The notes under the pieces were generated by a model. It saw nothing but the letters and a program-made list of their open reading frames with translations, was not told the DNA's origin and made no database searches. Positions 13,550-61,290 of a stretch of 64,000 nt of DNA are shown in pieces (positions within the stretch are counted from its first letter, which is position 1; the number at the start of each line of letters is the position of its first letter). This stretch comes from Chara braunii (taxonomy: Eukaryota; Plantae; Charophyceae): the NCBI GenBank assembly GCA_003427395.1, contig BFEA01000021.1:5248108-5312107 (forward strand), given 5' to 3'. Made by a program: the position numbers and the translations under genes.

Positions 13550-16500
13550 TGTGACGCGCAACCTCACGCCTTGTGCTGTCTTCCGTTCGGAGTGCTAAGA
13601 GTGCGGTAAGGGGGCCCAGAAAAACAGCAAGATGGGGTGTGCCAAGGATTTTTGGAAAATTGAGTGTGGGGACACAGACAGAACTGAAATCCCCCGTGTT
13701 GGCCCGATGAAGTAAGTCGGTTGCTTTCGCGCGTCGCGGAATGCGCGCGCGGGCACGGCGCGAAAAGAGAAAAATCCAAATTCAATCCAAAAAGTATTGT
13801 CGAGCTTCCCACCACGCTACGGATCTTCGTTTAGAGCGGAAGGGCTTCGGCACACTCCGCGTATCCCGTTTCCGTATTAAGTCCCGACGTCGCTCGTGGG
13901 TCAGTTTGTGTCCGACGTGGATGGTCTCAGCCGCGTGCCTCTTTCCTTGTGCTCGTCTTCACTCCGTATCCGGTAGTGGAAGCCCTTCGATTCGTAGCGA
14001 TCGAAACGCTGGCACTCAGTGCACAGGGTTCGAGGCCAATGGGGCACCACTGCCGTCCACGGAATGACGATCAGATCGTTAAATGGCAACAGTACTGAGT
14101 AGGGTGGAAAGTGCGTGTCGATAATGACAAAGCCCGCATCCACAAATCCAGAACAACGATTTTCGGGAGGGAAGTAATACTGTCCGCCGATTCGTGCGAC
14201 AGCTTCCCGTACGTCCCACTCGCATACACGTGTCCTTTCCTCGTTGTAAGGAAAGGGGCGCGTTGGCGAGGGAGATACGGAAGGCGTGCGCCCGATCGAG
14301 GAGCGGCCGTTAGTCCACATATCAATCAATCCAACAGAGTTTGCACAAACCCTCGAGACGTCATCAAAAAGCACGACCGAAAAAAATTAATTAGTATCTT
14401 TCTTCCCTTTGACACGAGAGAAGCATCCTACGGAACCCGCACAAGCATACATTGATCGGATTGAAGTTCCGAGGGATCAACCCGTGACTCAGTTTCGGCA
14501 GACCAGATCAACAAAACACGAGGCGCCTAGCTTTTTCGAGGCTGCCCCACAGACTGTCTGTTGATGTCGTGCAACATAAGGCAGATGGCATGCGCAGTGC
14601 GTTCAAAACGACAGATCTAAATACTCTTGCATTCTTGAACAAAATCCCGTTGAGCTCTGGGTCTAATCAACGCAAAAATACAAGCATCTCTATACATACA
14701 TCCACTGTGGAAGGTGCGAAAATGACAATAATGCACACGTTAAAGATGAATCGGGGGATTGTACACACGCATCCACCGCTCACAAGACAAGGTGATTGGG
14801 TTCCTTGTATCCGGGGATTACCCAGGAAACTAATGAAAGAGTTCCGGAAGAAGTTCTTTTTCGCGAGAAATCGGGTTAACTTCGATTCATGAGAGAAATA
14901 TAAACTCATAACACATCGTCATTCAAGTCAGAGAGAAAGAGAGGGAGGTGGGGGAGATAGGCAAGAACAGTTGAGACAGGAGACACCGGTATTCAACAAG
15001 GGAACATTCGACTTTGCAGTCGTGAACTCACACCAAAAATGATCCGCAACAATGAAGGCGCATTCGCCGTGAGATTCCAATATGGCCCCGGGTCAATCAT
15101 CCAATCAACTCCAACTACTGATCCTCATACTACCCGTACCGACGATCCCGGTCGTCGCGTGCTAATTTCCGCCACTACGATCGTCACCCCGCCGACGCAG
15201 ACCAGACTCGGCTCGGCTCGCCCGGATCCCACAGTCCGTCATGGCAATCAAGCGCGCAACCGGTTAGCCTACTGTCAGCCCGACAGGACTTTCCGACTCG
15301 CACCTAACACCTCACCTAGCCGCTGCTTCCCGGAAGTTGGCTTGGGAGTTGAGAACGTAAGAGAGATTTGCGGGCGCGTTTGCGAAATTTATAGTTGTGA
15401 GAAAGGAGATAGATGGGGGAGGAGACAGAGCGGAGATCGAGGTGTAAGGGGAGAAGGTTCAGCGAAAGGTGCTTAAGGGAAGCCATGTTGATCCTTCGGA
15501 ACGTGATACTCGGCCAATCAGATTCGTCGCGTAATAGAAAGATCCTCTTGCTCAACGCGTCTGATGGGGGAGTCGGGGTAATCGAAGGATCAACCGGGCT
15601 TTGTGAGCCAAGGTTGAAGAGCAAGAAGAGACGAGGCGCGAAAAGCAGCGCAAAAACGGGTCCAAGATTCAGATGATCAAGAAGGGGAAACAGACGCGCA
15701 AAAATCAGAGAGAGAAAGAGGAAAACAGTTGCGATAAGAGAAGAACAGGAGGAGGAAGGGAGAGAGAAGAGCGCGTGGAAAGAATGTCGCAGGAAATAAG
15801 GAGGAGGAAGCTCGCATGCGCGGTGCCGACAACAAGAGAAAAAGGCACCAAAACAGTTACAGCTTGCCTATATCCTACACCAATTCAAAAATTGAAATCA
15901 CCATATCCGCACACGAAAGTCGACACGGGAAATGAAACTTAAAGTCCTATGCCTATCCGTATTCTCACAAAATTCCTAGAGTTTTCTCCGTCGTGACCGA
16001 GAACATTCATGCAAGGAAAAAGATACGTCGGGCTCCGCTTATTCCGTAATTCCTAACTGCCGAGCCCGATTCTCAGTGCGCTCGCTAAGGCGCGCGTAAT
16101 TTCCCGTACATTTCCCGAATTACGAAAAGCAGAATTCCAAGAATCAATAGAACTTCCGAAAAAATGGGGGCCCAAACAAGGCGCCTGAAATCAAGAAAAG
16201 CGACGAGGGTTTTGTGGGGTTGGTATGATACAGAGAGGGGGTATTGAGTCAAGGGGTACGAAAGATAGCACGGGCTCGGGAAGTGGTTCGTTACATATGT
16301 GACGCGCAGGGGGTTCCAAAATTATGCGATCTCCTGATTGCATAAAAGTTCGAACAAAGGGAATAGGAGGAGACGAAGAAGCAGAAAGAAGTACAAGGAA
16401 CGAGGGGGGGGGGAAGAGAAGAGACGAAGAAGCAGGAAGAAGTAGGAGCTCGGATCGGCATGATGAGTTGGCGACAACATCCGTGGCAAGATCTCCGTGA

Positions 16501-39331: not shown

Positions 39332-39407
<76 letters not shown>

Positions 39408-39562
39408 GAAGACACTTACCTGTTGGCCGCTAGTCCCGATCGCAGCGATCGGGCAATCGACCCGAACGCAATGCACCACCCCACTGGATGGCTGTATCAG
39501 ACGGGAGAAAATAGCTAGCATACATTCGCTATCACTTACATTATAATTCTTATTCTTATTCC

Positions 39563-39619
<57 letters not shown>

Positions 39620-40183: not shown

Positions 40184-40251
<68 letters not shown>

Positions 40252-40724
40252 GTAATCTACAAATAAGGAAAATGTGTGTGAGTATGTGTGTGTGTGTGTG
40301 CGTGAGTGTGGGACAGAGGGCAATTTGGTGGTCTTCAGGGAAGGAGGCGAAGTGTGGGGTTATCAGGGACTGACTGAGGGCGGCAAGATACGTACCTAAT
40401 GCATGAAGAGAGGTCAGCTATGGTGTTGACATCATGTACATTGGTCTTCAAGAGTCGAAGCGAGCTTGTTGCGGAACAAAGCCGTAGGTAGGATAGTCGA
40501 AGTGGAGTAGGCTAGGCGTCGGGGGCCGGACAGAGGAGAGCGACTCGGGATACTGTGCTGGTGTGGCTTGAGCGATTGAACATTAGCTCATTGCTTCATT
40601 GTATTGCTCTACTCTGGATAGATTCTCGGGGCATCTGTACTCTCTGCTTGGACACGACTACTTGGGCATCTGTATGAATTCACAACTTGGTTTCTGTATA
40701 TTTTTCCCACTCATATTCCTTGTA

Positions 40725-40758
<34 letters not shown>

Positions 40759-41158
40759 GCATGATGATCTTTGGGTACTAGTGACATCTGCGCATGCGGG
40801 ATCGAGGTAGGGGGTGAAGCGAGAGACTTACCTGGTGCCTGAAGCATGCGGCGTTGGCCACTACCTGCTCATACTCAGAAAGCTGTTGTCGTCAATATTC
40901 GGCATCATAGTCTAGGCTAGAGAGGATCTGCTATTCGTAGTCTGGGCGCCGAGCGCCAGATAGGAAGCCAACATTGGTTATTCGTTGATGATGATGAGAC
41001 TGTTTCAGCATTGTCAAATTATGAGCTTTTGTTGTACTCTTATTTGGTGAAACTCGTGATGCAGTCCTGATGTTGGTTCGAGGTCACGACTATCTGGTCC
41101 CTAGTGTATGATGCTGTTCGATTTCTGAAATTCGTTGTTGCTCATCTTTCTTGCAAAC

Positions 41159-41219
<61 letters not shown>

Positions 41220-41266
41220 TCGTATTATTATTATTATCAATATTATTATCATCATTATTATCGGTA

Positions 41267-41328
<62 letters not shown>

Positions 41329-44300
41329 ATTAACTTCGCATGCATGCAAACAGATGGTGATGTACACTAGCGCTTGGTGCCCACTCAAAGCTCAGAGATA
41401 TGGAAGTCCGGAACGCAGTACGGATGCAAACTCGAAATAGCAGGCTATGGCACTTTAATGCCTGAACTCTCAAGACTCGTAACTATGTCTAACACCGTTG
41501 TTCGCACTCACTCTCACCCTGTATCACCCTGAATACCCCGCGCAGACGCTCTGAAACGCACACACGGGTTCACGGACATTATGACACAGTGAAAACAGAC
41601 ACTGTGACAGGGAACGGATGCAGAACATGGACAATGGTGCAGACAAACGCACAGACGGAGACCGAGACAGACAAACAGAAAGGGAGACAAAACAGGCAGA
41701 TAGACAAAGGGGGATACTTACCTGTATACGGGTGCGCCAAATGATGCTGCCATCATTCCCCATGCCAATGCTACACGACATGCACGGGATGAACCTGGAA
41801 GAGGGGGTCATCCGGATTCATCTATTTTATTGATTTACAAATTCGATGTTTTAGTTTTCAACTGTTACAGATCGTGACCTTTAGTAGTGTTCGATCGTAT
41901 GCAGGAGAAAAGAGAAGAGTGGAAGAACGAGAGGGGAAGAGAGAGAGAGAGAGGGAGAGAGGAATGATGTTGATGATGATGTGAGGGCACATACCTGGCA
42001 TTGGCAATGGCCTGCACGGGTCGACATCCCCGAGTGCTTCAGTTGGCTTCTGATGACAGCAGTAGCATCATCAATCAGTAAGATAGTAGTAGCTATGTAG
42101 GGAGTAGGCTGGGCACCGAGCGCCAAGTAAGAAGAAAGGCTTGGACACGTACGGTGGCAGTAGCGAGACTAAACTCTCGTTGGCATTTGGGTTTTCAGTG
42201 TTACGATTCTCCGTTGTTGTTATATTGGTGCAATGCTGCTTTCTGGGCACTGTAATACGACCTGATCTTCAACGTAATTGTGCAAACCGAAAATTTTCAT
42301 CTTGCTGTTGCTTGTTTCCCCTGCATAATTATTATTATTATTATTATTATTATTATTGTTTGCGATCAGATTCGCTTTTATTCATGCTTTCATGCTTGCA
42401 AATAGTAGCACAGCAAACCGGCGATGCACGCCCACTCAGTACTCAGAGATATGGCAGCCAGATAAGAGTTCACTTTCACTGGCTATGGCGACTCAGCACC
42501 CAACAACAACACTGTGCACATGCACTGGACCATCCTGGACGTCTCACGCATGATGCTGTGTGCTCACACAGCACACATGCCACTGAACACTCTGGGCATC
42601 CGCAGAGCACCGTGGCATAAGACGCTGAGACAGTACTTCCGCATGGATTCCGCATTACTGAAGGAATGCCTGGGCGCTGCCCTTGGTTTATACTTCTAAA
42701 AACTCGTTTGGTCTGCCCTGTCCCATCGGCCGTAGTGCTCGCAACCCCTCGCAGTACTCGCTGGACTTGGTTGGGACAGACCGGACAGGCAGGCAGGAAC
42801 AGGCAAAACTAGACAGACAGAACGGGCAAAACTAGACAGGCAGACAGACAGCGCAGACAGACAGGCAGACAGACGGTCGGAGAGCAAAGACACACAGACA
42901 CTATGACATGAACGCAGTCACAGTGATGCACACACAATCACCGGTGACAATGCACAATGACGCAGTGTGACGTGCGCACGAATGCCGTGACGAGCACAAT
43001 GTCACGCACTGTGACACACGCACTCGTGCAGATACAGTAAAACCCACACAATTGCGGTGACAGACACGGTGTCACATACGCGGTGACACAAGATCTTCGG
43101 ACACTTGCAGACCTTCGTGCACAAGATGCTCTGACAAGCGCTCAACACAGCTCGCAGAGTGAATGGATGACTTGACGCTGTTTCTTTATTTATGCTTCGG
43201 ATTGTCAAAGGACTGCCTTTGGACCCTGGGGTCGGGGTGCACGCAGTCCCACATGGTACTTGTTGACTTATCGAAGTGCGATCAAGACTGGGCACCGCAG
43301 ATTGGGCTGGGTCAGACTGCCGCTTGCCCAGTTGCCTACAGACTGCGTGATCGGACTCACGAACGGTCATTGCCAGAATCTTCATAAAAACTGCTGGTTG
43401 GATCTTTTGGCACTGTAGCAACTATGCTACAGCAGCAACTCCTAAGGCACGGACACCCAGTGCTCGTGACAGGCAATGCACTGTGACACAGATACACCAT
43501 GGTACGCGGCGACCCACAGTGAAATAGACATAGACATTGTGACACACACAGATGCAGTGGAACAGGCAGTCACACTGTGACAAATAGACTGTGACAGACA
43601 TATAGTCACGTGGTGTCGGTCACACTGTCACAAACTGACAGTTACACAACGACACATACGCTGTGGCACGTACACTTGCGCTGCACCTACAGCTATCCAA
43701 TGGTTGAGCTCTTCATCCGCGCCCACTGCGTCCTCCGGACTCGCTGTCGACCTCCTTGCCCAAACCACTGTGACAACACTTCTGTATGGCTCGCGCAGTA
43801 ACGAAGGAAAGGTTGGGCGCTGCCTCTTGATTTATACTTCTGTAAATCGTTGGTCTGCCTCTTTCCACCAGGCCTTAGTGCACGTAGTCCCGCACGGTAT
43901 TAGACTCGGTGAGACTGAGACTGGTACCGCTGGCTAAAAAGAGGTTGTACTGCCAACTAGCCTACGGACCTCTAGCCTAGCAAGTTACGACCTCTACACG
44001 ACTGTAACCTCTACTTGTCAGACCTACGGTCCAAGACTCAATGAGTGCATTGGCCTGCAACAGACAACAACTGACTCCGGGGACACAGAGTCGTGATGAT
44101 GGTGACAGCGGTTGTGGCATACACAGCAGAATATAGACCATGACATACACAGTGTGACAACAGCGGTGGCATACACAACAGAATACAGGTTGTGACATAC
44201 ACGGCGTGACCCAGACTGTGGCATACACGGTAAGGTACAAACTGTGAAGTCACACGGCGACACATAAGAGAGACGCATACGCAAAAGAGGGAGAGAGGGA

Positions 44301-44449
44301 CAGAAATGTGAGAGAATGAGAGAGAGGGGAAGAGAACATACAGGGTATACACTCGTAGTCACATTGGTAGTGGCGTCATTGGCCTTCACGGTCAAAGAGA
44401 GTCTGTTGCATTATCGCCAAGTAGAAGAAAGGCCTGATATACGTGTCGG
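38346..44449 (-). pseudogene. Array of short spliced-exon-like segments (decayed multi-exon gene or lncRNA) inside the nested insert
   Basis: Strong AG|GTAAG or GTATG donors near 38345, 39419, 40045, 40831, 41721 and 41995, each followed by CT-rich intron-like sequence. Exons bounded on both sides lie at 38346-38439, 39420-39491 and 41722-41794. Confidence 0.5.
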
Positions 44450-44678
44450 CTGCAACAAGGGAAAGGCCTCATTGACAGCTCTATGAAGTATTCGGATTCC
44501 GATTAATGTAACATCAGTGCATTGCTACTCTCTGATCAGAGTAGGACTTCCTGACTTTCAAGGGGATCTCACCGTCTGCACTCTGTCCTTCCGCTTTTCA
44601 CCATTGCCCTACGTCATTATTGTTATTACTATTATTATTCTAAAAATTATTATTATTGTTATTATTATTATTATTACG

Positions 44679-44725
<47 letters not shown>

Positions 44726-45039
44726 CTTGTGTCGTTATTCTGATTAGGCATCATACAAGGCCAGAGATGAAGAGAAAGCATGGGGCATTGGAAAAGGGAG
44801 TGACGCTACCCTTTTGCGATAAGTGCTCACCTCCTTCACCCTTCTCCATACTTAACTTTGTATGGTCCTCTCATACACCTGTCTCCTCAAGTTTATTCAG
44901 TTGAGGGTTTGATCACCGTTGAGTTAACCCTTACCTCATCTAACCCTAAGAGCCAGCAATCGATTGCATGAGTTGTATATGACCATTTTCAGGTGGAACT
45001 CTGGAGGCAGGGAACAGCGAGGTATGTGTACTTCAAACA

Positions 45040-45064
45040 TAAACCCTAAACCCTAAACCCTAAA
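45040..45064. repeat. Interstitial plant-type telomeric repeat / telo-box cluster
   Basis: TAAACCCTAAACCCTAAACCCTAAA. Confidence 0.75.
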
Positions 45065-47989
45065 TCTGTAACCTTTAGGCTGCTACCTATGACTATGTTA
45101 GTAACGAGGGTACAGCGATCTTGCTATGTGGGTGTTCTTTGGGGATGTGGATGCAAAGGGGATCGATTACTCATATTCTTCTCTCTATACGCCGTCTGAT
45201 GATAATGTGTTTTATTTGGTTCAGCCTGTTGTGATTGAATGCAACGATGATGATCCATGTTAATTATTTCTTGTCATACGTCTGATCCAAATATAAGTTC
45301 TCAAACTAACAACGATTCAGGGCTCGAATGCCATCAAAAGCGATGACTTGAGCCATAGGTAAGACTTGTGTGGAGGTGAGAATAGCAGGGAAAGCCTGCC
45401 TTAACTCCAAATGAGCCTTACGCTTGGTCAGTGGTAAGTGCAGGTACCCTTGGACACCCGCCTTATTGAGGGCTAGCCACTGATAAGAGTAGCAGGGGAA
45501 TCATGTCTTATCAGTGACTAGTCTGATATAAGAGTTGTGAGGTTTCAAGGACACCTGCCTTATCATTAACCAACTTAACATTNNNNNNNNNNNNNNNNNN
45601 NNNNNNNNNNNNNNNNNNNNNNNNNNNNNNNNNNNNNNNNNNNNNNNNNNNNNNNNNNNNNNNNNNNNNNNNNNNNNNNNNNNNNNNNNNNNNNNNNNNN
45701 NNNNNNNNNNNNNNNNNNNNNNNNNNNNNNNNNNNNNNNNNNNNNNNNNNNNNNNNNNNNNNNNNNNNNNNNNNNNNNNNNNNNNNNNNNNNNNNNNNNN
45801 NNNNNNNNNNNNNNNNNNNNNNNNNNNNNNNNNNNNNNNNNNNNNNNNNNNNNNNNNNNNNNNNNNNNNNNNNNNNNNNNNNNNNNNNNNNNNNNNNNNN
45901 NNNNNNNNNNNNNNNNNNNNNNNNNNNNNNNNNNNNNNNNNNNNNNNNNNNNNNNNNNNNNNNNNNNNNNNNNNNNNNNNNNNNNNNNNNNNNNNNNNNN
46001 NNNNNNNNNNNNNNNNNNNNNNNNNNNNNNNNNNNNNNNNNNNNNNNNNNNNNNNNNNNNNNNNNNNNNNNNNNNNNNNNNNNNNNNNNNNNNNNNNNNN
46101 NNNNNNNNNNNNNNNNNNNNNNNNNNNNNNNNNNNNNNNNNNNNNNNNNNNNNNNNNNNNNNNNNNNNNNNNNNNNNNNNNNNNNNNNNNNNCAGTGATA
46201 AAAATAGCAAGGATCCTTGGACACCCGCCTTATTGAGGGTTAGTCAGTGATAAGAGTAGCAGGGGAATCCTGTCTTATCAGTGACTAATCCAATATAATA
46301 AGTAGCGAGGTTTCAAGGACACCTGCCTTATCAGTGACTAGCCATAGGATAAGCCTACCGCTAAGTATGCTTTGGCTCACAAGGGTCAAGACCCACAAGA
46401 TTTGCCTTTGTCAAACAAGTTCCAGTAACAAGTGGATATGCCCTGAATGGTCTGCCATACCGACGCTAAATTTCTCCATGATCTGCATTGTTCAGTCCTA
46501 ACTGACTATCTCTGATTCTACTGAGAAAGGGATAAGTGAGATCTTGCCTCAGAGAGAGACTATCCATTTGTCTGATTCTTTCCATGATATTCTTTTCCAC
46601 AGGTTGGATTGATGATGTGTTCAAAGAAGGAAGGGAACTCAGACAAGATAATCCAAAAAAGGATAGGAATGAGATAGTGAGGAGAATATGGGGAGTTAGT
46701 ACGACAGTAAAAGAGGAAGTAAATTATTATTCACTACCTAAAGCGAAAGGGCAACAGCCCAAACAATTAGTTAAGGATAGAAGTCAGACAAAAGACACAG
46801 AGTCTAGAAGGAACTTTCTAGATCTCAGTTAGGAAGAGAGATGTTAAGATTCTCTTGGACTGTGTTGTGTCTACAGGTTTCGACACTTCGGAGAACTTAC
46901 GGGGAAATCCGTAAGAGCAACAATTCTATTATCTCTGGATAACAGGTCGGTAGAACTCCGACTCAACTTCCACCATGGCTTGACACCCACACCTAAGACA
47001 AGACCTAAGAAGGAACAAATAAATCTTCCCCCTGTATCTATGCCTAAATTGTCCAAATCACACTCAGGAGTCTTCGAAAATGTGTGGGGCTGGGGTAAAA
47101 TGGAGTCAGGGTTAGGAAGGAATGTTGATTTCAAGGGCTTGGGGCGTGAGTGACTTGCTATGAATGAATTAAAGGTTGACGCTTATAGTGCATTCTGTGT
47201 TTGCATCTGTATGCGTGTATGTGGTTTTCTTGCATTTGCACAGGTGTTGGACATTTGTGCTGTCTTCTGAGTTAGAGATCGTCTGAGAAATTCGGGCAAA
47301 GGGACACGACAATCGTGAAAGTGAGGTCCACCGCTCAGTCAGCTCCCCCTGATTTACATACATACAATATATATATATATATACTTGTGAATGGGATCGT
47401 AGTTGGTCAGGATTGGAAAGTCATTTGTCTAGGCTTCTGTTTGAGAGAATTAGAGACTACAAAGGGAATCGACCCTGGCATTCTCACATGATGAGTAAAG
47501 TAAACGTTGAGTCATGGTCATGGTTAGCTAAGCGTGGAAGACTGTCCGAGAAGTCGACCTGATTAGATAGTCGGTCCGGAGAGTTAGCACCTCGGGGCTC
47601 GACATACGGGTCAGTCTTAAGGCGTTCTACCGCGCGTATGCCTATGCTACGGCGATCGAGAAAACGCCCTCTGTTGGCCTACCTCTACGATTGCATATAA
47701 AAGCCTTCGTATGTGGGTCAGTAGCTCAGCAGGGATACGCCCACCTAAGGGATGGTGACAGCTCTCGCAGGTGGAGGTAATGTTGTACCTCGCTGGACCC
47801 TAACCTGTCGTAGGGAGTCGCGAGAGGTATAACACGCGCGCACGGTCCGAGTTGGTATTGCATAAATAACAAAGAAGACTCCTGCATGACACGACCGTGA
47901 GGTCCAACACCAAAAACTACTTTACGTCTGGGTGTGGAGAAACTCCTGCGTGACACGACCGTGAGGTCCGACACAAAACTACTTTGCGT

Positions 47990-49080
47990 CTAGGGTATGG
48001 GACCGCCGTGCGCGACAGCGCAACTTCGTACAGCTCCCGCGCACGGATCAGAGCCCCTCACACACGCGTGCAAGCCCGCGAATGGTCAGGACCGGGAAGC
48101 GCGCAAACGCGCGTACACGCGCGCAAGCCCGTGGACGGTCGGGATCAGGGAGCGTGCAACCACGTGCACACGCGCGCGTATCTGCGGACAGTCGGGATCG
48201 GGAAGCGCGCAGCCACGCGTACACGCGCGCGAGCCCACGGGCGGTCAGGATCGGGGAGCGCACAGTTGCGGGCGCACGCGCACAAGGCTGCGGACGGTCA
48301 GGATCGGGGATCGCGCAGTCGCTGGCGCACGCGCGCAAGCCCACAGACGGTCAGGATCGGGAAGCGCACAATCGCGCGTACATGCGCGCAAGCCCGTGGA
48401 CGGTCAGGATCGGGGAGCACGCAGTCGTGGGCGCACGCGCGCAAGGCTGCACACGGTCGGAATCAGGGAGCGCGCAGCCGCGGGCACACGAGCACAAGCC
48501 TGCAGACGGTCAGGATCGGGGAGCGTGCAGTCGCAGGCGCACGCTCGCAAGGCTGCGGACGGTTAGGATCGGGAAGCGCCCCGCGCGCAAACACGTGCAC
48601 GGTAGGGCACAAACCTCTCGCGCACAGTCGGGGCGGGGGCGCGGAACAGCTGCGCGCATATCGGGATCAGAGTGGGACAGCCGAAGAACCGGGCCATTGG
48701 GGCGCTGACGGGACATCCGCCAGATTGGGACCCCAGCGAGGACCGGAACTTCAGGCCAAGAGCAGATCGGGACTTGAGTGAGATCGGGACTTGAGTGAGA
48801 TCGGGACTTTTGACGGGACCGAGACTTTGAAATCAGGCCGGGACTTTCGGACCGGGCCGGGACATTTGAGACCAGGCAGGGATATTCGAGTTCAGGCCGA
48901 GGCCTTCGGACCAAGACGGGCGATTGAGAGGCTTGAACCTTCGGACTCAGGCCAGGACCATCGAATTTAGTCCGGGACCATCGGATTCAGGTCGAGACAT
49001 CAGACTAAGACCTGGACTATCGGATTCAGGACGGGACATCAGCGTAAGGTCGGGGCCATTACAGGGCGACACGTCAGACT
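47990..49080. repeat. GC-rich tandem arrays (~59-bp unit, then ~20-bp unit)
   Basis: Repeated GACGGTCAGGATCGGG(G/A)AGCGC (48060-48620) and GGACCATCGGA(T/C)TCAGG-like units (48760-49080). Confidence 0.85.
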
Positions 49081-49660
49081 AAGGCAAGGAGATTCAACAG
49101 TCGACAGGGAATTGTGAGATCAGATTGGTGTTTTCTTTGAGTTCTGGCCGGAGTGTCTAAGATCAGGACAAAGACCTTATTACCGTCACGTGAATGAACT
49201 GATGGTGAAACTCGATTTGGAGTTGTGGCCCGAGTGGGCCCGTGAGTCTAGCTCCGACACGGAGAGCTCCAGCACAATTCCATGGGATCAGCGGGTTCGT
49301 TATCGGCGACACCCTATCGAGCGGAGGATTCGCCCTAGGTTGATGGTGAGATCGGTTGGGACTCAGACCAATTTCCCTGACTTGGACACAGGGTCTCTCT
49401 CTGGGGTTGAGAGTAGCGTGATGAACCCTATTATTTTTGATTAAATGGAAATGTACATTTTGTTCCTGCCAAACGCTGGACTGTGAGTGTCTTGTTGTTG
49501 TGTCTTCAGTCAACTCCAATGCTCATCGAGTGGTTTTTTGACTAACCGTTTTTTTCTAGCAGGTTATAGGAGCCCCGATTGCCCCTCCCACGGGTGACAA
49601 ACGTGGGGTGACACACAGGGTGCGATCGACGTGCCGGCAAAACCCTCAAACCGGTCGACA

Positions 49661-50212
49661 ATGTCTCACCTTGTCGCGGAACCAGGAATAATTATTATGA
49701 AAACGGACTTCCCTCCCTACCACCACATACCGCCCTTCCATTCGCTGACCATCATCCCCTGGCGTGCAATTGCTTCGTATTGGCCGTGCTCGGAGTGCTT
49801 GCAAGACCACTAGTACCGAGCCTCCGGTTTCATCCAGCGAACCCGCTCAGAGGAAGAACGATGGGCGCACAGCCTTCGGCTATGGCCAGCCGCGTCGGAT
49901 TTCGAGACCAGTGACGCACGACACCAATAAGTGGTCGGACAGCACGATAGCCATAGCGCCCCGGCCATGCACCAAATACAAGCCCGACCCAGACGACGGA
50001 ACCAACAGAGGTGGTAGCCCCACGCTCAGAAACACAAAAACAGACTTTGACCCGCGCCTATCCTTTTGCATCGCTATCTTTGAACTTGCCCCAGGAGATC
50101 TCAGTTCCGACCTGGGACTCCACCCCACTTTCCCAAAAATCCTTGGCACACCCCTTTTCGCACTTCCAGGCTCATTCACACTCCGAACAGGAAGTCGTGT
50201 TGGGCTTGAGGT
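49661..50212 (+). repeat. 5' LTR of element C, right part
   Basis: Colinear with 60315-60875; ends ..CTTGAGGT with no CA. Confidence 0.9.
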
Positions 50213-50225
50213 TGGTATCAGAACC
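50213..50225 (+). promoter_or_regulatory. Primer-binding site, initiator tRNA-Met type
   Basis: TGGTATCAGAACC versus the canonical TGGTATCAGAGCC. Confidence 0.85.
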
Positions 50226-50369: not shown

Positions 50370-51593
50370 ATGAATGCCGATCCGACACCGAATGCTAGTG
50401 GGGCCCCGACCCCTCGAGTGCACGTGCCAATAACCCCGCCTAATTTATACCTTTTTGACCCTGCGCATCATCTGGCCGGAGCATGGCTAGCCACGCTGGG
50501 CGCACAACAATACGACAATGATGAGGCTAGGATTAACATCCTCGCCCGGTTGGGAGGGGATGCGCACCACTGGTTTACCACTTATGTATGGGTCGATCTC
50601 CCGACCTTCGAAAGAGACTTCCTAAACAGGTTTGATTACATCCACCCTGAGCAGGTTTTCTTTATGATCAAAGATTGAGTTCAAAAGCCCCTCGAATCTG
50701 TCGCCGAATACCGAAGTAGGTTTTATAGGCTATTTATTAAGTCAGAACGAGGTGAAAATATCGAGAGGGATTTGTTTATCGATTGACTCCGAAGTCGAAC
50801 AATGAGGGCCAAGCTGCGAAAGCAGTTCTCCCTCATCAACCATACCATGCAACAGATCATGGATATGGCAGAAGAAATGAGGAGAAAATTCGTTGCTAGC
50901 TTCCTAGAAGGGGAGGATCACGCCAAGGAAGGAGACTCTTCAGAATTACCCAGGGTGAAGACTGAGTTAGCTGCGCTTCAAAACAAATTTGAAAACATGG
51001 CCTTTATCTCCAGCCCCGTCACTTACCTAAGAACGATACCTGAAACAACCACGGGACTGCCTGTGATGGTCGTCCCTATGCCTCCCCCACCTGTGCCTCC
51101 TCCGGAACCTCCCGCGAAACCAAATGAGCCAAACGCAATACTGGAGCTGACCCGAACATTAATTAGTCTGATGCAAGAGAGCAAAAAAGAACGGTGTGAG
51201 CACAATGCTCGGATAAAATCTATGATGAGATTGATGCGCCCTATCGCTGTTCGAGCTGCGCCTATAACACAGGCAATAGCCCCTGCCCAGGCTGTGGGCG
51301 GTGCAACGACTAATCTAGGCATCTGCTACATATGTCACCAGCCCGGCCACCTGGCTCGGGACTGCCCCAACCGACCAGCACAAGTTCGGGTAGGTGTTGC
51401 CCCTGTGGCAGCAACACCAGTATCCAACAGGCCAGGAAGAGTAGGCACGATGATCGAGGAAACGGAGGGAGGAGGAAGCACAATCGTTACCACCGAGGAA
51501 ACGGCGGAACTCATCCCGCTCGATCAGTACATCTCGCTGGGTTACCCAGGAATGAGAATGATTGGAACCATCCAACCAGTGAACGAACGATGA
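50370..51593 (+). pseudogene. gag: Gypsy gag (interrupted) with CCHC zinc knuckle
   Basis: LGGDAHHWF..FERDFLNRF capsid-like segment and CYICHQPGHLARDC. Confidence 0.85.
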
Positions 51594-51929
51594 GAAGTTG
51601 TGAAATGGAGATCGTTCCCCGGAGAAATGGAATCTGGTGGCCCTACCTTCGTTACAGGAGAAATCGATGTCCTGAACATCGTCCGAGCTCTAGATCATCG
51701 GATCCCTCTGCCCATCGGACATCTACTGTCCATATTAGAATATGCAAATGAACGAATGTTGCAGCATTGCAAAGCCAACCGGAAACGGATTGACCTCACA
51801 AGGCAGGCAACCATCAAAGGGAAAGCCCCCGTCTGCGAAGACAAACTCGATGTCCCCAGCACCTCAGACCCGATACGGTTAGGACTCATTCGGAAAGATG
51901 ATCATTTCCTTCGCATTAACGTCATTCCG

Positions 51930-54900
51930 TGAAAATCCGCGGAATGTGACATACAAGTTTGGGGAAATCCGTACAAAGCTATCATCGATTTAGGAGCCGC
52001 GGGCCTGGCCATTTCCTTGAGGGTTGTAGAACGAGCAGGAAGAAGAAGGGATTTTATCCCGTTAGCGGAAGGAGACCACCTTGTCTCCGCCGACAAGGAA
52101 AAGATCAAGGTAATAGGAAGGATGACGAACGTTGCGTTTCGATTGAGAAAAGTTCACGCGTTGGGAGATATCGTGGTATTAGATGTGAATACGTACGATG
52201 TTCTTCTGGGATTACCGACCCTTACCGCACTGAGAGTCAACCTCGACTTTGAAAGACGAGCAATCATCCTTCGGAATACGGGCGAGAAACCGTATGTTAT
52301 CCCGATGCGTCTAACTCTCCGGACTGCACTCCGTACGGCCCGGAAGACTCCCCCCAGAAGTGGAGAACCACTCCACGTAATCACCTGGAGGGAACCCCTC
52401 CAGAAAATGGATGAAAGAGAAAAAGAACTGGAGCTATCAAGTAGCTCCTCTGAAGGCGAGAATGAAACGGACCCTGAGATTTGGGGTATGGTGCACCAAC
52501 GGATTCATTACCCCGTGCGACAGAAAACATCGAAAACATTCGTCCTTACTGAATGGAACCTCCTGCGAACGTGAGCCTTAGTCCTAGGGGAGCCTCCCGT
52601 TCAAGTGTCCCGAATGGCTGATTCTTCGGAACCCCCTAGGAACTTATACGAGATCACCACCCCGCTTCTCTCAAAATAAAATGATAAGAAAGCATTCTGC
52701 GACATTTCGGGAGTGCCTCGTTCTCTGCTCTCTACAAGGAAAGAGGTTCGATTGCTGCGATAGGGTGCCAAGGGCGAAACTTTGGAACCCCCTGGGCGTG
52801 GCAATCCATACGAACTCGGGATCAAGATCGTGGAAAAACTAGTTAGTTTGCAAGATATCGACGACGGGGTAACACCAAAAGAGCACGTGGCAATCAGGAA
52901 GCAGACGCCCAGATGGTCGCCACAGTGTTCTCCTAGCGATCATACAGTTCATTCATCTCCACGCCTGGGAATGGTAGTAAAATGGGTATGAAACAGATGA
53001 TGGTTAACATACACGGACAACTCTATGAGTTACATGTGCCCCAGTACATGCCCGACGAAACACATCGACTAATCGCAAATATCCTAACCGAATATCAAGG
53101 AGCGATTAGCATCAAAGACATGGATATCGGGTTGTCATTAGTTATTCAGCACGAAATCCAAACCGGAACGCACCCCCCAATCCACTGCAAGCCATACAGG
53201 TACTCCCTCGCCAAACGCAGGACAACATTGGAACGAATCAGGGAATTTAAAGCTAATAGTTGGATTGAGCCTGCTACTGGACCCTAGTTCTTCCCCGTAG
53301 TTCTAGTCTCAAAGAAGAACGGGTCGATTTGCATATGCATCGATTATAGGAAGTTGAATGATATCCCGATCAAGGATGTGTACCCCCTCCCCAGGATTGG
53401 TGATCTATTGGATGCGATTGGGTGTGCTAGATATTTTAGTAAGTTTGATATCCGCCATGGGTTCCATCATATCCTGGTTAAGGAGGAGGATCAACCGAAA
53501 ACGATGTTCGTACTGTTCGAAAGCACGTGGCAGTGGGTTCGTTGCCCTATGGGAATATGCAATGCGCCAGCTACCTTTCAGAGAGCGATGAACATCACCT
53601 TTCAGAACTTCGTCAACAAAACCCGACTGACCCAGGGAATGATCAACTTCTGCGTCATTGTGTATATGGACGATATTTTGGTGCATTCTGAATCGTTTCA
53701 CGGACATGCTCAACACATTGAGTGGACGCTCGGGGAATTGCGGGATGCTGGATTCAAGATTGCACTCGAGAAAAGTGAATTTTTCCTCTCGGAAATCTCA
53801 TTTTTGGGATACGTGGTGACACGAGGAGGTTTGAGGCCAGATTCGAGAAAAGTTGAGGCGGTTCGAGAAGCCCCTATGCCCACGTCGCTGACGCAGGTTC
53901 GAGCCTTCCTGGGGCTGGCCTAGTACTACCATAGGTTTATCAAGGGGTTTGCGGCAATCGCTCGGCCCCTGACAAACCTCCTACGGAAAGATCAGCCACT
54001 CAAGTGAGACGCGGAGTGCGAGCAGACCTTTGTCACTTTGAAGGAGGCCCTCGCCTCCGCACCTATTTTGATTCGGCCCGATCCTGAAAAACAGGTCATT
54101 CTCATTACGAACTGGCAACCTGAGGAGATTCCGCTATTTTGGCCCAGAAGGGGAAGGATGGCCGCGAACACGTCATCGAGTACACTTTGTGAACCGTGCC
54201 TGACGAAAGAAGGAACGATTCGGCCCCGATAGGTGAATGTTATGCGGTCGTCTAGGGAATTCAACACTTCCATCCGTATTTGTACGGACATACGTTCCTC
54301 CTCGTCACGGATCACGAGCCCCTGCTATCTCTCAAAAGGCTCACCAACTACACGGGCGTGATTGGTCGATGGGCTGTCCGGCTACAGAAGTACGACTTCG
54401 ATATCATTCATCGAAAGACGAAAAAGCACGGGAACGCAGACGGGTTGACACGACTACATCGGCCAAGCAAGGTGGCAAAAGGTGAGGAGATTACTCCGTG
54501 GAAGGAGTCGGAGCCAACTAAGGGACCCCCATACGGAGAAGTGGACATTCTCCCCCGACCGTCCAGGAAGTGACACGTAAACGCAATGGCGATGGATGGA
54601 GAAGGTAACTCTAGAGGCCCTCTTTCTCCCCTCTCATCCTCTTCTCTCCTTTCCTTGCCCGACAAATTTTGTTACTTTTGCGAAGCAATATCGCGGGTCT
54701 ATTCGGTTCTCATGTGTCCTAGTGGGGAGGGATATGTCGAGTGGGTAGACTATGAACGGTGTGTCTCCCGGGCCCACGGTTTCTGTATCCAATACAAAAA
54801 CGCAGATAAAGCTTGGTTATATCCTTTGTGTCGAACCAATAAAATCCCAACGGAGGCTCGATTCCTCGAAGCCATGTCCGAAGGGCTGAAAAAAACACGT

Positions 54901-56140
54901 AAGTTTCGACGGGTGAAAGTATGGACGGATGTCGTTTTGATAGTCACAGTGGTCGGGAACTCCGCCCGAGAATTTACCAAAGAAGATCGGAGGCGAGCTA
55001 ACGAAAGGGCACGAGATTATCGATGGAACGACGAACGATTAGAAAAATAAAAGACTGATGGTAGTGGGATTTGGATGTTGGTGCCTCATCCGTTCACGAG
55101 GTACAACTGGGTTAAGGCGGCCGACAAGGAAACCACTGCTCACTTTGCTGTCAGAATCACGGAAGCCGCAATTGACAAAAACGAATGGTATTGGTCCAAC
55201 ATCCGGGACGATGTTAAATTCATCATAAAAAATTGTCCAGTTTGTGCGGCAGATAAAACGTCGATTCAACCGCCTAGGTCGATAGTACCTACTGTAGTCG
55301 AGCGACCGTTCCAAAAGGTTAGCATGAACACAACAGATATTACTGTGCCCCCTGGACCGAATAACTGCGAATATTAAATTATTTTGGTGTTCGTAGATCT
55401 TTTCTCGAAATGGATCGAGGCTTACCCGTGTAAGACGCGGCAAACGACGGAGATTGTGTTGTATATCAACCGTTTCCTCGGAATGCATCAGGATACCGAG
55501 GGAATTTTAATGGATAACGGGGCGAAATTCTGAGGAAGGAGCCTAGTCATACATGGTGTCTCCATCCGTAATACGGCTCCCCATATGTCGCAATCGAACG
55601 GACTAGTAGAAAATGCGAACCGGGTAATTAAGACCGCCTTGCGGCGAAATATCGTGGCACGCGACACGAGGCCTTGGCCCGATGTCGTGGACCACATCCT
55701 AGCTATCTACCCCCTCTTGAGGTTACTTGCCTGACCTCTTTTCAGTTACGGACCAATAGTCTGGCTTGTGTAGCCCTGCCGAACCTGAATGACGAAACGA
55801 CCCTTGCGAGACGGACCACTAGAGCGACGGTCAAGGACAAGGTTCAACGCCACCTAGAATTGATGGAAAAAGCCCTCCCCCGGTTAGCCCAAAAAAGACA
55901 GCGGATGACCGAAATGGCCCATGGTCGGCAGGTCCGGAGCTATGAGGCCCGAAATGGGAACGCTGGACCCTGGCCCCAATATAAATTAGGGGATAAGTGC
56001 AGGTGAGGAAATGTGCTCGCCAAGGCAAGCTAGCGCCACAATTCTTCGGGCGATTTTGCGTAGTCGAGCTCGGTCCTAGCGGAGTGAACATGGTGCGGCT
56101 TGCACCAGAGGTCTTAGGAAGTCGATCGGCTTGACCGATT
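51930..56140 (+). pseudogene. pol: Gypsy pol: protease, reverse transcriptase, RNase H and integrase, with many stops and frameshifts
   Basis: AIIDLGA..YDVLLGL (protease); YPLPRI..FSKFDI..PMGICNAPATFQ..VYMDDILV (RT); TDHEPL..HGNADGL (RNase H); H..YW..CPVC zinc finger and SNGLVENANR (integrase). Confidence 0.93.
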
Positions 56141-56297
56141 ATCGACACGTGTCCTATCTTCGCCCCTTACCTCCTTCTCCTTCTCCGCCATCGTCCACGT
56201 CATCCTTCGATTCTGCGGGGGAAGACGACGATCTCGAGCTCGAATACTCTGACTCGCCTTCCTCTCAACCTCCATCTCCAACTCCTCCCCCATCACC

Positions 56298-58345
56298 ATG
56301 AGCTTTTCTACCGAGCAGGTCATCAGTGAATATCTAATGAGACCCGGGGGGCATATTTCATCGATTCGACAGGTGCGGCGACCACGATTGAGTCCGGATC
56401 TGCTTCGCTTTGCGGCTTTCTTCAGCACAACGGTCATCCATGTGGCAACGGCATTTCGGTTCGCACGCACCAGCGAGCGGACAAGAGTGTTGGCTGAGGC
56501 ATCGACTTTTCTGCGGCTGTCCCGCCTAGCAACAACCACGCGTCAGTGATCGTCGCCTTCACCAACGATCTCATGGCACTGTATCCGGCAGGTCATACGG
56601 GCGCCCTCAACAACTGCGACTCTAGGCCCGGGACCTCACGAAGGTGTGGATCCAGCTGTTAGCCCGACCAGGCGATCGGGTCGGCTCCACCAACGACATC
56701 GACCTCATCCAGCTTAGACTCTCTCTCTCTACGCTGGAGTTTATCATCCTAGAGCTTCTTCCTTTTGCACCGCCTCAATGAACCGGCACCGCCTCTCTAC
56801 CTTCGGGCTTCCCTCTGATCTTCCTACCTTCTGGCAGTCCGCGACGAACATCCCTCTCTTTTTTCGGATCCGGCAGCTGGACGTGTCGATCCTCGACGTG
56901 GGCAAGTGGGTAGAGTGGTGGAACGCGTACGTCGCACTTAGCTTCTATTTCCTCGAGGCGGTGTTCCATTGGGCGGGGCCGACCGACAAAGACGAGGAGG
57001 ACAAGGTTCCTGACGTTGAGGTGGAGTTGCTGATCGTCCAAGCCTAGAGAACGGATACAGAGGGGGAACTGTTGGGGATTCTATTCGGGAAGGTGAGGGG
57101 CAGCCACCTGGAGCCAATCACAAATGAAGCCCTGGTGTTCCTGGCACAACTCCTGGACGGTCTGCCCCTCGACATCATTTCGCAGTGCGACGAGCGGCCC
57201 GCGGTAGTGGCGTTTACCCGTACATTGGTACCACTTTTACTGTGGTCCACGTGTACGGAGCTTAACGGTGACAATTGCTACTACCCCTCCTCAGGCCACT
57301 ACCTGGCCATCAACATGACCGATCTCACTTTGTGGGATCCGATCATCTGAAGAGTGGAGGTGGAAGGGGTAGCTGACGACACGGAGGAAGAAAGAGAAGA
57401 GGAAAGTGAAGAGAAAGAAGAAGAAATTTTGGAGGTGGAAACCGACGATCCCGATTACCACGAGTCAGAGGATAGTGAGTTGGGAGGGAGTGGGTCAGGC
57501 GAATCAGATAGCCACAGCGAGCTGAGCAAGGAAGAGGACGAGGTGGCAGCCTAGCGGAGCCGAGAGGGGGCGGAAGGAAAGCGGCCAGTGGAGGAATCAG
57601 ACGGGCTAGCAACGCGGTTGTCACAAGGTTATCCGGCGCGAAATTTAGAGCCGTCGCAGGAGGAATCTGGAGGAAATGGCATTGCCACCGCAGAGGGATC
57701 TATAACCAGACACCGCAGAGGGATCTAGAACCAGACACCGCAGAGGGATCTAGAACCAGACACCGCAAAAGAAGTCCAATGTCGGCTCAATCCTCTTCAC
57801 CTCCGCGGCCCGCCGTTCGCCTACATGGAGATAAGGGCGCTCGGGCTTCGTCCCCGATCATTATCCCGCCGTCCCCTTCATTTTCTCGCCATCCACCAGC
57901 CTACGGGCCGACCGCCTTTTCCCTCGAATTGGCATCCCCTCGCCCCTTCCCTTTTCCACCAGCTCTACTCCACCCGCCTCATCATCAACGTCTTCCCGCA
58001 TGCGACCACTCGCTCTATTGCAACCTCCTTCCCTCTTTTAGCGCGGCATGGCAGGAATATAATAATATAAAAGTTTATTGCATAATTTTTGGCACCATCC
58101 CCACCTGCGAAGGTTACGAGGATTTCCGCGCCGCGATTCCCCGCACCCTCTGTACCCTTTACCCTGATTACCTCGCTTCGCTCCCACACCAGGATCATCG
58201 CTTACCCCGCATACATCGCATCGTCCATTACACCCGGCTCCCCACTGGGGATCGAGAGCAGAGTCGCTTTCTACCACCTCTCCCCCAAGCTCACCCTCCT
58301 CTTCCTCCTCCCGCCATCAGACTACCTTTCCCCGACAACCTCTAG
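56298..58345 (+). pseudogene. Extra post-integrase ORF(s) of unknown function in the Gypsy family
   Basis: Peptides (EQVISEYLMRPGGHISSIRQVRRPRLSPDL; ELLIVQA..GELLGILFG; acidic tract; YPDYLASLPH) are conserved with the minus-strand copy at 16742-18767. Confidence 0.7.
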
Positions 58346-58507
58346 GATCGGAGTTCGCGATGCCACCTTGGATGACTTCCACACTCTCATCTTACGGTGA
58401 GTGGCACATATCAGCTCCACAATGATCGTTGGCAAGTTTTAGGACCAGCCAATGGCGGAGAGCAAGCAGGAACTTGCTCAAGATTGGAACCCCCTGGGCG
58501 TCACATA

Positions 58508-60890
58508 TGTGATGAACTGTTCTCTGCAACCACGCGGATTTCTGCACAAGGCTATATCGGGGGGAGGGGGGGGGGGGGAAATTGGCTGAGTCGGAATGGC
58601 CTGGCGGTTTGCATGGATGCCCCTGCTTTTTCTTGTCTCTTTCGATTAAAGGCTGGTCTGGTCCCACAGCAGTTGATAGTTGGTCGCGCCTCAGCGAGCG
58701 CGATGAATAAACGGTTGTCATAGCTTCTTTTTTGTTTGGCTGTGGAGAATGAGAATTTTGGCGCGATTGTCGCGCGGGAAAATCTTTTTGAATTTTCAAC
58801 TAATGTCGAGCCCTTACGGGCTCTCGAAATTTGGTTCGTTCGGATTTTCTTTTTGTAATTATGACTTAGAATAGAAATTTGGGCGCATCTCAATTTTTGT
58901 TGCGCGGCGCTTCCTGCTTGCACACGCTCGCCCGCATCAGGAACTGTGTTCTGACTTTCCCGCATCTTAATCTCGTGTGTAACTGTAATCATTGTTTGGC
59001 AGGCGTAATTGCAACTATAATCCTCTCGTTCTTTATATCTTTTGGGGCGCCTTTGCACGCGCTTACCTCTCCCCTATCTTATTGGCCTGAACGCTTGCTT
59101 GACCGGATCGATGTGTGGAGTGTGGCTGCGTCCCCCACGCCGCGGCCTGGCCATGCAGGCGTAGGCACATCCTTCCTCCTTCTTCCTCCCACCCGAACAC
59201 GATCCCGAGTATCTCGCACAAAGCATGCATGCTATAAATCTCACAAGCGCGGTTAATTCACTTTCTAAGACCTTTTGGAGTTAGCGCGGTCGAGAGGATC
59301 GGCTAACGAAGCAGGAGTTGGCATGTGAGTAAGAGATTTGGGCGATCCGACGAGCTAGTGCTGGGCGTGCGGGGTTGACGTGGGGTCGCGATGGACTGTG
59401 GCACACGGGCGAACCTGACGGGCATGCTCGGGCTAAGCGGGGTGACAACTCGGCGTAGGTGCAAGGCGACGGACTGTCCGTATCAAGACGTTGTGAAGAG
59501 AGAAAGACAGAGAGAGAGAGGAAGAGAGAGAGGCGGTAAGTGTGCGATGAGTTTCTTCTTCTATCCCTCTAAAGCCATTTTTTATTCTTCTTCTTTCCTT
59601 CTAAGCAATTTTGGTTTTCGGCGCAAGTCGCCTTTGTTTCTTTCGATCGGCATCTCGGATCTTTTCTTCGCTTGTCTCTAGTGATTGATGCATGATTGTT
59701 TCTCCCATTTTGTTCTCCCCTCTATATGGATGGACCCCATTGATTGGTTATTGCCCATGATCGAATTTTGTACGATCCCGATGCATGAATGATTGTCACC
59801 TTCCTTTTTTTGTTTATGTATGAATAAAACTGGACGCGTGGACGATGGGTATTTGTCTGTCGAAATTAAATAAGCATGCTAGATGATTAAATGTCTGTCT
59901 CGCCATAGGGCTATCCACCCTCGGTTAACAGGCCAGCACGTACGAGACATGGGTCATTAGTCATTGTCTATCGGACCGAAGGGCAGATCTTGTACACACA
60001 CGTGTAAGCCCGATCAGAAGAACGTGGCCTACACGCGTGTCTGGAGTGCCTGTGCTCGGTCCAACTTTTCGAATAACCGAGTTTCTGCCTCACCCCACAA
60101 CATGAATATTGAACTCTCTTTTCGTATTACTGACCGCGAGTGTTTGAGAGATCCAAAATTTCGGCAGTACTAGGAGCACGTGTGTCTGTCTGCACGACCG
60201 AGGAGAGAGCTTCTTGAATTTCAATACCCGGTCGGAAACGAGCGCATCTGCGAGTGGGATATCGACCGAGCTCGAGAACGCATTCCCCACCACCCGGAAT
60301 TCCCCAGCTCGTACACGTTTCACCTTGTCGAGGAACCAAGAATAATTATTTTGGAAACCGAATTCCCTCCCTACCACCGCATACTGCCTTTCCATTCGCC
60401 AACCATCATCCCCTGGCGTGCAATCGCTTCGTATTGGCCCCAACCCCCGTGCTCGGAGTGCTTGCAAGACCACGAGTATCGAGCCTCTGGTTTCATCCGG
60501 CGAACCCGCTCGGAGGAAGAACGACGGGCGCACAGTCTTCAGCTACGGCCAGCCACATCGGATTCGCGACCAGCGCCGCACGAAGCCAACAAGTGGTCGA
60601 ATAGCGCGATAGGCATAGCGTCCCGACCATGCACCAGATACGAGTCCGACCCAGACGACGGAACCAACAGAGGTGGCAGCCCCACGCTCAGAAACACAAA
60701 AACAGACTTCGACCCGCATCTATCCTCTTGCATCCCTATCTCTGAACTTGCCCCAGGAGATCTCAGTTCCTACCTAAGACTCCACCCCCATTTTTCCAAA
60801 AATCATTGGCACACCCCTTTTCGCAATTCCAGGTCCATTCACACACCTAATAGGAAGTCGCGCCGGGCATGAGGTTGGTAGGGCGTCACA
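58508..60890 (+). repeat. 3' LTR of element C (~2.4 kb) with a 15-nt terminal extension
   Basis: TGTGATGAAC ... GAGGT-TGGTA-GGGCGTCACA. Confidence 0.92.
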
Positions 60891-61290
60891 CTGCCAACCC
60901 CCCCCCTCCGCTCCAACACCCAAACCCTCCTTCCGTTATCCATCACCCTCCATATTCCTCATCGCCAGCCACTTCACAGCCATGCTATGGCAAACACATC
61001 CTGCAAGAAGTACCAAGCACTGCTGCAAGTCGGCGTTGAATACAGGCATGGAAGCTGCAGCCTGCAGCACAACCATGACTAGTGCATTCCACCTGTTCAT
61101 CCAATGCATGATCGCCATGATGGTCATGAACAGCACATTATCATCGACTTCCTCTCCTCCATTACGTTGATGCTGATGTGCTCCTCCGCTGTCCATGTGA
61201 GGATACTGGATGCAGGAACAGGAGGAACAGCACCTCGCGCTTCGAAAAATGCTGTCTTTCGACACCAACGTGACCCCCACCGACGTCAAT
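60891..61290 (-). pseudogene. N-terminal part of the same Harbinger-type transposase, separated by Gypsy element C
   Basis: Joins 33721 across the CTGC TSD and reads RVWVLERRGG..QDL into the central fragment. Confidence 0.6.

Follow-up and report, generated by a model that had tools for sequence, protein, structure and literature searches.

Non-canonical termini in a Ty3/gypsy retrotransposon lineage of Chara braunii and a possible route through joined long terminal repeats

We analyzed a 64,000-nucleotide (nt) stretch of the Chara braunii genome (GenBank assembly GCA_003427395.1, contig BFEA01000021.1, positions 5,248,108 to 5,312,107), called the window here, which holds a degenerate Ty3/gypsy retrotransposon copy that we term element C (33722-60890, + strand). 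We found that the termini of the lineage to which element C belongs are made in a non-canonical way. The right tip of these elements, including its terminal CA, is supplied by a block of 10 to 11 nt, (T)G[G/C]GCGTCACA, that the 5' long terminal repeat (LTR) lacks. Normal LTR replication cannot produce a copy of this block at the right tip only, which implies that, before integration, the two complementary DNA (cDNA) ends are either joined or one is extended by a copy of the other.

Termini of element C and its relatives

Element C was delimited by self-comparison of the window and by direct reading. Its 5' LTR is split in two by a nested insertion of about 14 kb. The first part (33722..35583, + strand) opens with TGTGACG and corresponds to 58508-60319 of the 3' LTR at 88.5% identity. 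The second part (49663..50212, + strand) ends ..GGGCTTGAGGT, and an alignment of 49663-50217 with 60317-60880 (87% identity) has breakpoints that complement those of the first part. This 5' LTR has neither a terminal CA nor GGGCGTCACA at its end. Instead, GAGGT at 50208-50212 abuts directly on the primer-binding site (PBS) TGGTATCAGAACC at 50213-50225 (+ strand), with no CA between; other copies read TGGTATCGGAGCC at the PBS.

The 3' LTR of element C is built differently. Upstream of it, on the + strand, lie a conserved, non-purine pre-LTR motif, TTGGAACCCCCT (58484-58495), then GGGCGTCACA (58496-58505; block copy B1, the template copy of the terminal 10-mer), then a TA spacer (58506-58507), after which the LTR opens with TGTGATG at 58508. 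The spacer, invariant in 10 copies, forms with its neighbors the palindrome CGTCACA-TA-TGTGA(C/T)G. The part of the 3' LTR held in common with the 5' LTR runs from 58508 to 60875 and closes with GAGGT (60871-60875). It is followed by a linker, TGGTA (60876-60880), identical to PBS nt 1 to 5, and by a second GGGCGTCACA (60881-60890; block copy B2). B2 is the true right terminus and the source of the terminal CA, so that the whole 3' LTR is 58508-60890. The sequence CTGC follows at 60891-60894 and is duplicated at 33718-33721, where the reading is ..GGTC CTGC and then TGTGACG; B2 therefore lies inside the target-site duplication. At the place expected for a polypurine tract, the longest purine run within 60 nt upstream of the 3' LTR is 6 nt, and purines make up 6 of the last 15 bases.

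An initial annotation of the window had described the 5' LTR as meeting the PBS without a terminal CA, the 3' LTR as preceded by a CA-TA-TG junction in place of a polypurine tract, and the right terminus as GAGGT plus TGGTA plus a copy of the 10 pre-LTR nt bounded by CTGC. All of this agrees with our reading. Two coordinates needed correction: the element ends at 60890, with 60891-60894 being the right CTGC duplication rather than part of the element, and the left CTGC is at 33718-33721 and not near 49.6 kb, the 5' LTR being split.

The window also holds element B (13550..16319, - strand), a diverged relative of which only the 3' part is left and which has the same anatomy. Its motif (16319-16308), B1 GCGCGTCACA (16307-16298), and TA (16297-16296) precede the LTR (16295-13561), so that the sequence from 16319 down to 16289 reads TTGGAACCCCCT-GCGCGTCACA-TA-TGTAACG. 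The right end, 13565 down to 13550, reads GAGGT-T-GCGCGTCACA, with a single T as linker (13560) and B2 at 13559-13550. Internal sequence of element B (18962-19459) is 66% identical at the DNA level to the integrase region of element C.

We then took 12 loci with 10-kb flanks from the same assembly and could read junctions in 11. One locus (L005) showed none of the family junctions, and the other 11 each carry a family copy, giving with elements C and B the sampled set. The terminal block was missing from the 5' LTR in 12/12 copies, which read ..GGGCGTGAGGT followed directly by TGGTATC.. and end GAGGT without CA rather than forming co-terminal TG..CA LTRs; the exceptions at this junction were GAAGT for GAGGT in L004 and a degenerate PBS in L001. 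A PBS of the form TGGTATC(A/G)GA(A/G)CC abuts U5, the unique 5' region of the LTR, in 11 copies. No copy had a 5' LTR ending ..GCGTCACA before the PBS, the arrangement that the initial annotation had named as contrary to its account, and its prediction of 5' LTRs lacking CA was borne out throughout. At the other end, all 11 readable right ends have GAGGT, a short linker, and then G[G/C]GCGTCACA; changes within this block are mostly of the CpG type, and the block of L011 is 2 nt shorter. U5 ends of the family have the form ..CGATCAGGAAGTCG..GAGGT. In most copies U5 closes with TGGGCGT-GAGGT, which places a further copy of TGGGCGT, the opening 7 nt of the extended block, a few bases within U5; at this place (60864-60875 in the window), the two LTRs of element C read CGGGCAT and TGGGCTT.

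The pre-LTR site was equally constant. The order motif, block, TA, TGTGA was found in 10/10 copies, with at most one change in the motif, and the conserved sequence at the place of the polypurine tract is TTGGAACCCCCTGGGCGTCACATA. In nine copies, purine runs within 60 nt upstream reached at most 5 to 6 nt, with L012 alike. No copy had a polypurine tract, even where LTRs are 95% identical; a normal tract in young copies was the second arrangement that the initial annotation had named as contrary to its account. Perfect 4-bp target duplications were present in 5/5 copies with both ends readable, always outside B2: CTGC (element C), CCGT (L002), GTGC (L006), AGCC (L010), and CTAC (L011). The left tip is TGTGA and the right tip ..CACA. 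Two copies with perfect target duplications, L002 (near 20776) and L011 (near 19298), end ..GTCACG and not ..GTCACA; either the two have an A-to-G change of the last base in common, or the position of the cut varies.

We compared the two block copies within each element. B1 and B2 are identical over 10 nt in element C, element B, L006, L010, and L012, and they differ by one or two changes in L002, L004, and L007. In L011, B2 is 2 nt shorter than B1 and its last base differs; in L009, B1 falls in an assembly gap. Both B1 and B2 contain GGGCG in the main lineage, and both contain GCGCG in the diverged lineage, to which element B and L011 belong. The initial annotation had predicted a right-end extension matching each copy's own pre-LTR sequence, and this is what we observed, as GGGCGTCACA in the main lineage and GCGCGTCACA in the diverged one. 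Its further prediction, a variable segment between U5 and block, held as well: of the 11 right ends, seven have T as linker, two have TC, one has TA, and element C alone has TGGTA. As a PBS remnant, T and TGGTA fit, TC and TA not being PBS prefixes.

The variation is confined to this joint. When the right ends were aligned together with 60 nt of U5, 4 of the 11 copies differed by an indel at the U5/block joint. Within the U5 stretch, main-lineage copies other than element C have no indels, while element C and the diverged lineage have one lineage-specific gap each; the 11 aligned 5' junctions have none. With LTR pairs 87 to 96% identical, every copy sampled is old. The pattern was found on 12 different scaffolds and is not due to chance, because it recurs in every related copy examined.

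A candidate route to the right terminus and its rivals

Genomic RNA of an LTR element spans from the R region of the 5' LTR to the R region of the 3' LTR. The tip of the 3' LTR is never transcribed, and both progeny U5 copies come from the RNA 5' end. Because the 5' LTR of the Chara elements lacks the block and progeny U5 is copied from that end, B2 is not inheritable; it must be remade in every cycle from B1, the sole copy of the block in the RNA. There, the block occurs only just upstream of U3 (the unique 3' region), after TTGGAACCCCCT, and with the start of U3 it makes the palindrome CACA-TA-TGTG. These ends require that the U5 end be joined to the pre-U3 segment or be extended by a copy of it.

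We propose the following route. Plus-strand synthesis would start upstream of U3, leaving a left cDNA end that carries block-TA. The right cDNA end would stop at GAGGT plus bases copied from the transfer RNA (tRNA), with no CA for integrase. The U5 end with 0 to 5 extra nt would then be joined to the extended left end, giving an LTR-LTR junction of the form U5-linker-block-TA-U3. Integrase would cut 3' of both CAs of the palindrome, producing a left end TG.. and a right end ..block-CA, and would insert these ends with a 4-bp stagger. That a ligated LTR-LTR circle cut by integrase at CA-TA-TG explains the termini is the reading we prefer, tentatively and at somewhat less than even odds (about 0.45). 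There is biochemical precedent for such a cut: the integrase of foamy virus cleaves an LTR-LTR palindrome with 2 nt between CA and TG (PMC1180852), and that of HIV-1 cleaves its own palindromic LTR-LTR junction (PMC1905944). The length variation at a single phosphodiester position looks like a joint made anew in each event, and in plant retrotransposons small indels are the accepted hallmark of 2-LTR junctions formed by end joining (PMC9324142).

The pre-LTR motif also occurs inside the elements. The protease-coding region of main-lineage copies contains TTGGAACCCCCT twice, at a distance of 156 nt. In element C, the first (52626-52637, + strand) reads TCGGAACCCCCT, with TTGGAACCCCCT in other copies, and lies in frame in the protease-region coding sequence; the second (52782-52799, + strand) reads TTGGAACCCCCTGGGCGT, is identical over 18 nt to 58484-58501, and is a candidate central plus-strand priming site. 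The pair is present at the same places in L001-L003, L007-L010, and L012. The diverged L011 has the first site only, with one mismatch, and lacks the second. Site 2 is near-invariant amid a variable, indel-rich stretch, and its conservation extends into GGGCG(T). Central primer copies occur in lentiviruses and Ty1, which the internal TTGGAACCCCCT copies resemble, and the two copies fit the role of a plus-strand primer signal. This gives indirect support to the view that TTGGAACCCCCT(GGGCG) takes the place of the polypurine tract, with plus-strand DNA starting upstream of U3. About 20 nt upstream of the motif, we also noted a small hairpin (58462-58477, + strand), GCAAGC-AGGA-GCTTGC in the spelling of most copies. 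It has 6 pairs and an AGGA loop in nine copies, with one compensatory change from G-C to U-A in the diverged lineage; as evidence the hairpin is weak.

Several observations weigh against our preferred reading. Both internal motif copies are in frame (Leu-Glu-Pro-Pro), and constraint at the protein level may explain part of their conservation. The motif, r(UUGGAACCCCCUGGGCG) as RNA, is pyrimidine-rich and resembles no known RNase H-resistant primer. No U5-block-TA-U3 junction was found in about 360 kb made up of the fetched loci and the window, no circle or junction molecule was seen, and the best-supported joints, those listed in a read layout over 58400-60950, included no U5-to-U3 back-joint. 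Neither TC nor TA, among the linkers, is a prefix of the PBS. The covariation of B1 and B2 between lineages amounts to one evolutionary event, which is supportive and not decisive. Finally, the sampled copies are old and their integrases degenerate, so that neither activity nor enzyme specificity can be judged from them.

A reverse transcriptase (RT) that switches templates from end to end, with no ligated circle, fits nearly as well, though we give it somewhat lower odds. The minus strand would first copy the region of the plus-strand primer, and once the primer is removed its left end would have a single-stranded 3' tail that pairs with (T)GGGCGTCACA. On completing the plus strand at U5, RT would jump to this tail and copy it as far as the plus-strand 5' end. 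The resulting right end, ..CACA-3'OH, could undergo strand transfer from a linear or gapped-circular molecule. The details of the joints speak for such a switch. The PBS and the block both start with TGG, so that microhomology of 1 to 3 nt (T or TGG) could help, and the commonest joint is GAGGT-T-GGGCG, in which T (or TGG) is common to the start of the PBS and the edge of the block. The block boundary is exact in 9 of 11 right ends (the exceptions being L011, whose main copy is 2 nt shorter, and L004, which is mutated). The single extra bases C and A resemble non-templated additions, which RTs make before end-to-end switches, and the absence of junction relics from the loci is neutral to favorable. 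Against this, the switch needs asymmetric processing, since the minus-strand tail on the left would have to lose 13 nt; the TGGTA linker seen in element C shares no microhomology with the block; and no observation speaks for the switch directly. Our data fit both the ligated circle and the template switch and do not decide between them. The interpretation in the initial annotation, which had named both options, is partly supported: its three testable predictions held and neither of its two refuting conditions applied, and the mechanism itself may be a ligated circle or an unligated switch.

Two other explanations fared far worse. The element might be canonical, with LTRs that both ended ..GGGCGTCACA, and element C might have lost 15 nt from its 5' LTR by slippage between TGGTA repeats; it is old (LTRs 87 to 88% identical), and TGGTA does stand both before its block and at its PBS start. 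But it is alone in this, 10 of 11 right ends having no TGGTA repeat to mediate a loss, and the block is absent from 12/12 independent 5' LTRs. A deletion confined to element C is extremely improbable and is rejected, since 11 other 5' LTRs also lack the tip. It is hardly more credible that the right-end block lies outside the element, as a preferred target sequence or as an artefact of assembly or annotation. The assembly is a repeat-rich, short-read one with many N runs and collapsed repeats, which would favor an artefact; yet the five perfect 4-bp duplications, whose flanks are unrelated, are all external to the block, the block tracks the internal variant of each lineage, and the 12 scaffolds involved are different ones. 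We consider both explanations refuted and leave them together only a very small share of the probability, the remainder going to routes that we have not thought of. We also considered the block or the preceding motif as a tRNA-like 3' end or second PBS and rejected this: the similarity is loose, position 56/57 of the T-loop does not fit, and C would be the first base of the acceptor.

Returning to the joined-end route, its full form holds that the lineage cannot integrate linear cDNA as made, that it needs an LTR-LTR junction (a 2-LTR circle or a nicked equivalent) with CACA-TA-TGTG as the real integrase substrate, and that priming is by the non-purine TTGGAACCCCCT that recurs in pol. This larger claim is possible, and we hold it with a little less confidence than the cut circle as such.

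Coding content, surroundings, and abundance

Degenerate gag-pol sequence occupies 50802..56143 (+ strand) of element C, in which Pfam and tblastn identified a CCHC knuckle, protease, RT, RNase H, an integrase zinc finger, and remnants of the integrase core. The Pfam matches in its broken open reading frames (ORFs) were, in + strand order, zf-CCHC, RVP_2, RVT_1 (3e-27), RT_RNaseH, and Integrase_H2C2. The rve (DDE) core was found by Pfam in the better-kept relatives L002 and L006, and Retrotrans_gag was also among the family matches. Because the domains follow the order gag, protease, RT, RNase H, integrase, element C is a Ty3/gypsy element and its orientation is certain. Its PBS is probably of the initiator-methionine type (plant tRNA-iMet); no tRNA genes were found in the window or the fetched loci.

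Between the integrase core and the 3' LTR, all copies have a conserved coding region of about 500 amino acids (56778-58345 on the + strand and 16745-18266 on the - strand of the window; 16046-17519 in L006), 44 to 72% identical among them. It consists of a domain of about 170 amino acids (LPSLFPTFWQS .. IIQAWRT .. CLEEPG), an acidic run, and an RRRRS-SPSPS tail that is Arg/Ser-rich and of low complexity. No Pfam match was found for this region, and its look-alikes in the Atlas were unnamed streptophyte proteins. We considered it as an extra enzyme, a ligase or nuclease, and set this aside, there being no Pfam match and no mechanistic clue in the alignment.

The nested insertion (35584-49662) breaks the 5' LTR of element C at a site matching 60317-60319. 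It is repeat-rich and has no long ORFs; a tandem array of 53-nt units occupies 47999-48632, and runs of N fill 39044-39224 and 45583-46192. Around the truncated element B (19436-23880 and 8326-9331), we found satellite arrays with units of 53, 35, 172, 13/26, and 92 nt; the 172-nt array spans 21476-23514, and long CT/CA microsatellites are nearby too.

Searches with the gag ORF matched only Chara braunii proteins, at about 65% identity. A pol query matched about 88 C. braunii proteins at 47 to 100% identity and nothing above 44% outside Chara. Since matches outside Chara are absent or at most 44% identical, the lineage is, as judged by similarity in current databases, Chara-specific.

The read layout mentioned above was made at 80% likeness and comprised two runs of DNA contigs and two runs of RNA reads. 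Summed contig depth over the first 60 nt or so and the last 170 nt or so of the LTR, and over the pre-LTR motif, was 10 to 100 times that in the middle of the LTR; the termini therefore appear to be common to a very abundant set of subfamilies in Chara braunii, whose genome is about 2 Gb. Oligo-dT RNA sequencing of the species gave a few hundred reads with 80 to 95% likeness to the family over the LTR (578 reads in run X7), concentrated at 59088-59517 and 60722-60893. These reads are low-level transcription of family members rather than of the element C copy.

Meaning and comparison with known systems

In textbook reverse transcription, an element has two identical LTRs, and the ends of a copy are predictable from the boundaries of the PBS and the polypurine tract. 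The Chara family breaks both rules regularly and heritably. In the joint and its varying extra bases, integrated copies record how the cDNA ends met. It has long been asked whether a DDE integrase can use an LTR-LTR junction as a productive, or even an obligatory, intermediate of integration, and this becomes testable in one organism; if our proposal is true, the family would be a living example of the circle-junction model of integration that was abandoned for retroviruses. There is also a practical consequence, in that programs for finding LTRs, which expect a polypurine tract and TG..CA LTRs that are co-terminal, will misplace the boundaries of this apparently very abundant lineage. In the literature, we found no such termini described for an LTR element with a DDE integrase and nothing on the ends of Chara retrotransposons; most subscription journals and Repbase were outside the scope of this search, and a precedent is possible.

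The family has much in common with canonical Ty3/gypsy elements (Metaviridae): gag with CCHC, protease, RT, RNase H, and an H2C2 plus DDE integrase in that order, a TG left tip, a CA right tip, a tRNA-type PBS abutting U5, and a 4-bp duplication. It differs from them in that the LTRs are not co-terminal, the last 10 to 11 nt being on the 3' LTR only and U5 lacking CA, and in that TTGGAACCCCCT and a copy of the terminal block precede U3 in place of a polypurine tract. With the 2-LTR junctions of foamy virus and HIV-1 (PMC1180852, PMC1905944), it shares a CA-NN-TG palindrome at which one concerted cut would give two 3'-processed ends. However, both retroviral LTRs are complete, linear DNA is sufficient, and the circle route is optional and disputed. 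In the Chara family, the junction step appears obligatory because the linear U5 end has no CA.

The split direct repeats of DIRS, Ngaro, and PAT elements (A1 .. B1-A2-B2) are alike in that the segment before the 3' repeat recurs after it, which implies end joining before integration. Those elements use a tyrosine recombinase, have no DDE integrase, and make no target duplication, whereas the Chara family has an rve integrase, 4-bp duplications, and a B segment of only 10 to 11 nt. No tyrosine recombinase domain was found by Pfam in any scanned ORF, the rve integrase being present instead; together with the target duplications, this rules out membership in DIRS/Ngaro. IS3 and IS911 circles offer an analogy only: a DDE enzyme acts on abutted ends 2 to 3 bp apart, but these are bacterial DNA transposons without reverse transcription and have no relation by descent to the Chara family. 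An analogy for the rival template switch comes from hepadnaviruses, with their primer translocation and circularization through DR1 and DR2; these direct repeats, about 11 nt long, and one additional switch of template unite the genome ends during plus-strand synthesis, in a genome of another organization and with no integrase step.

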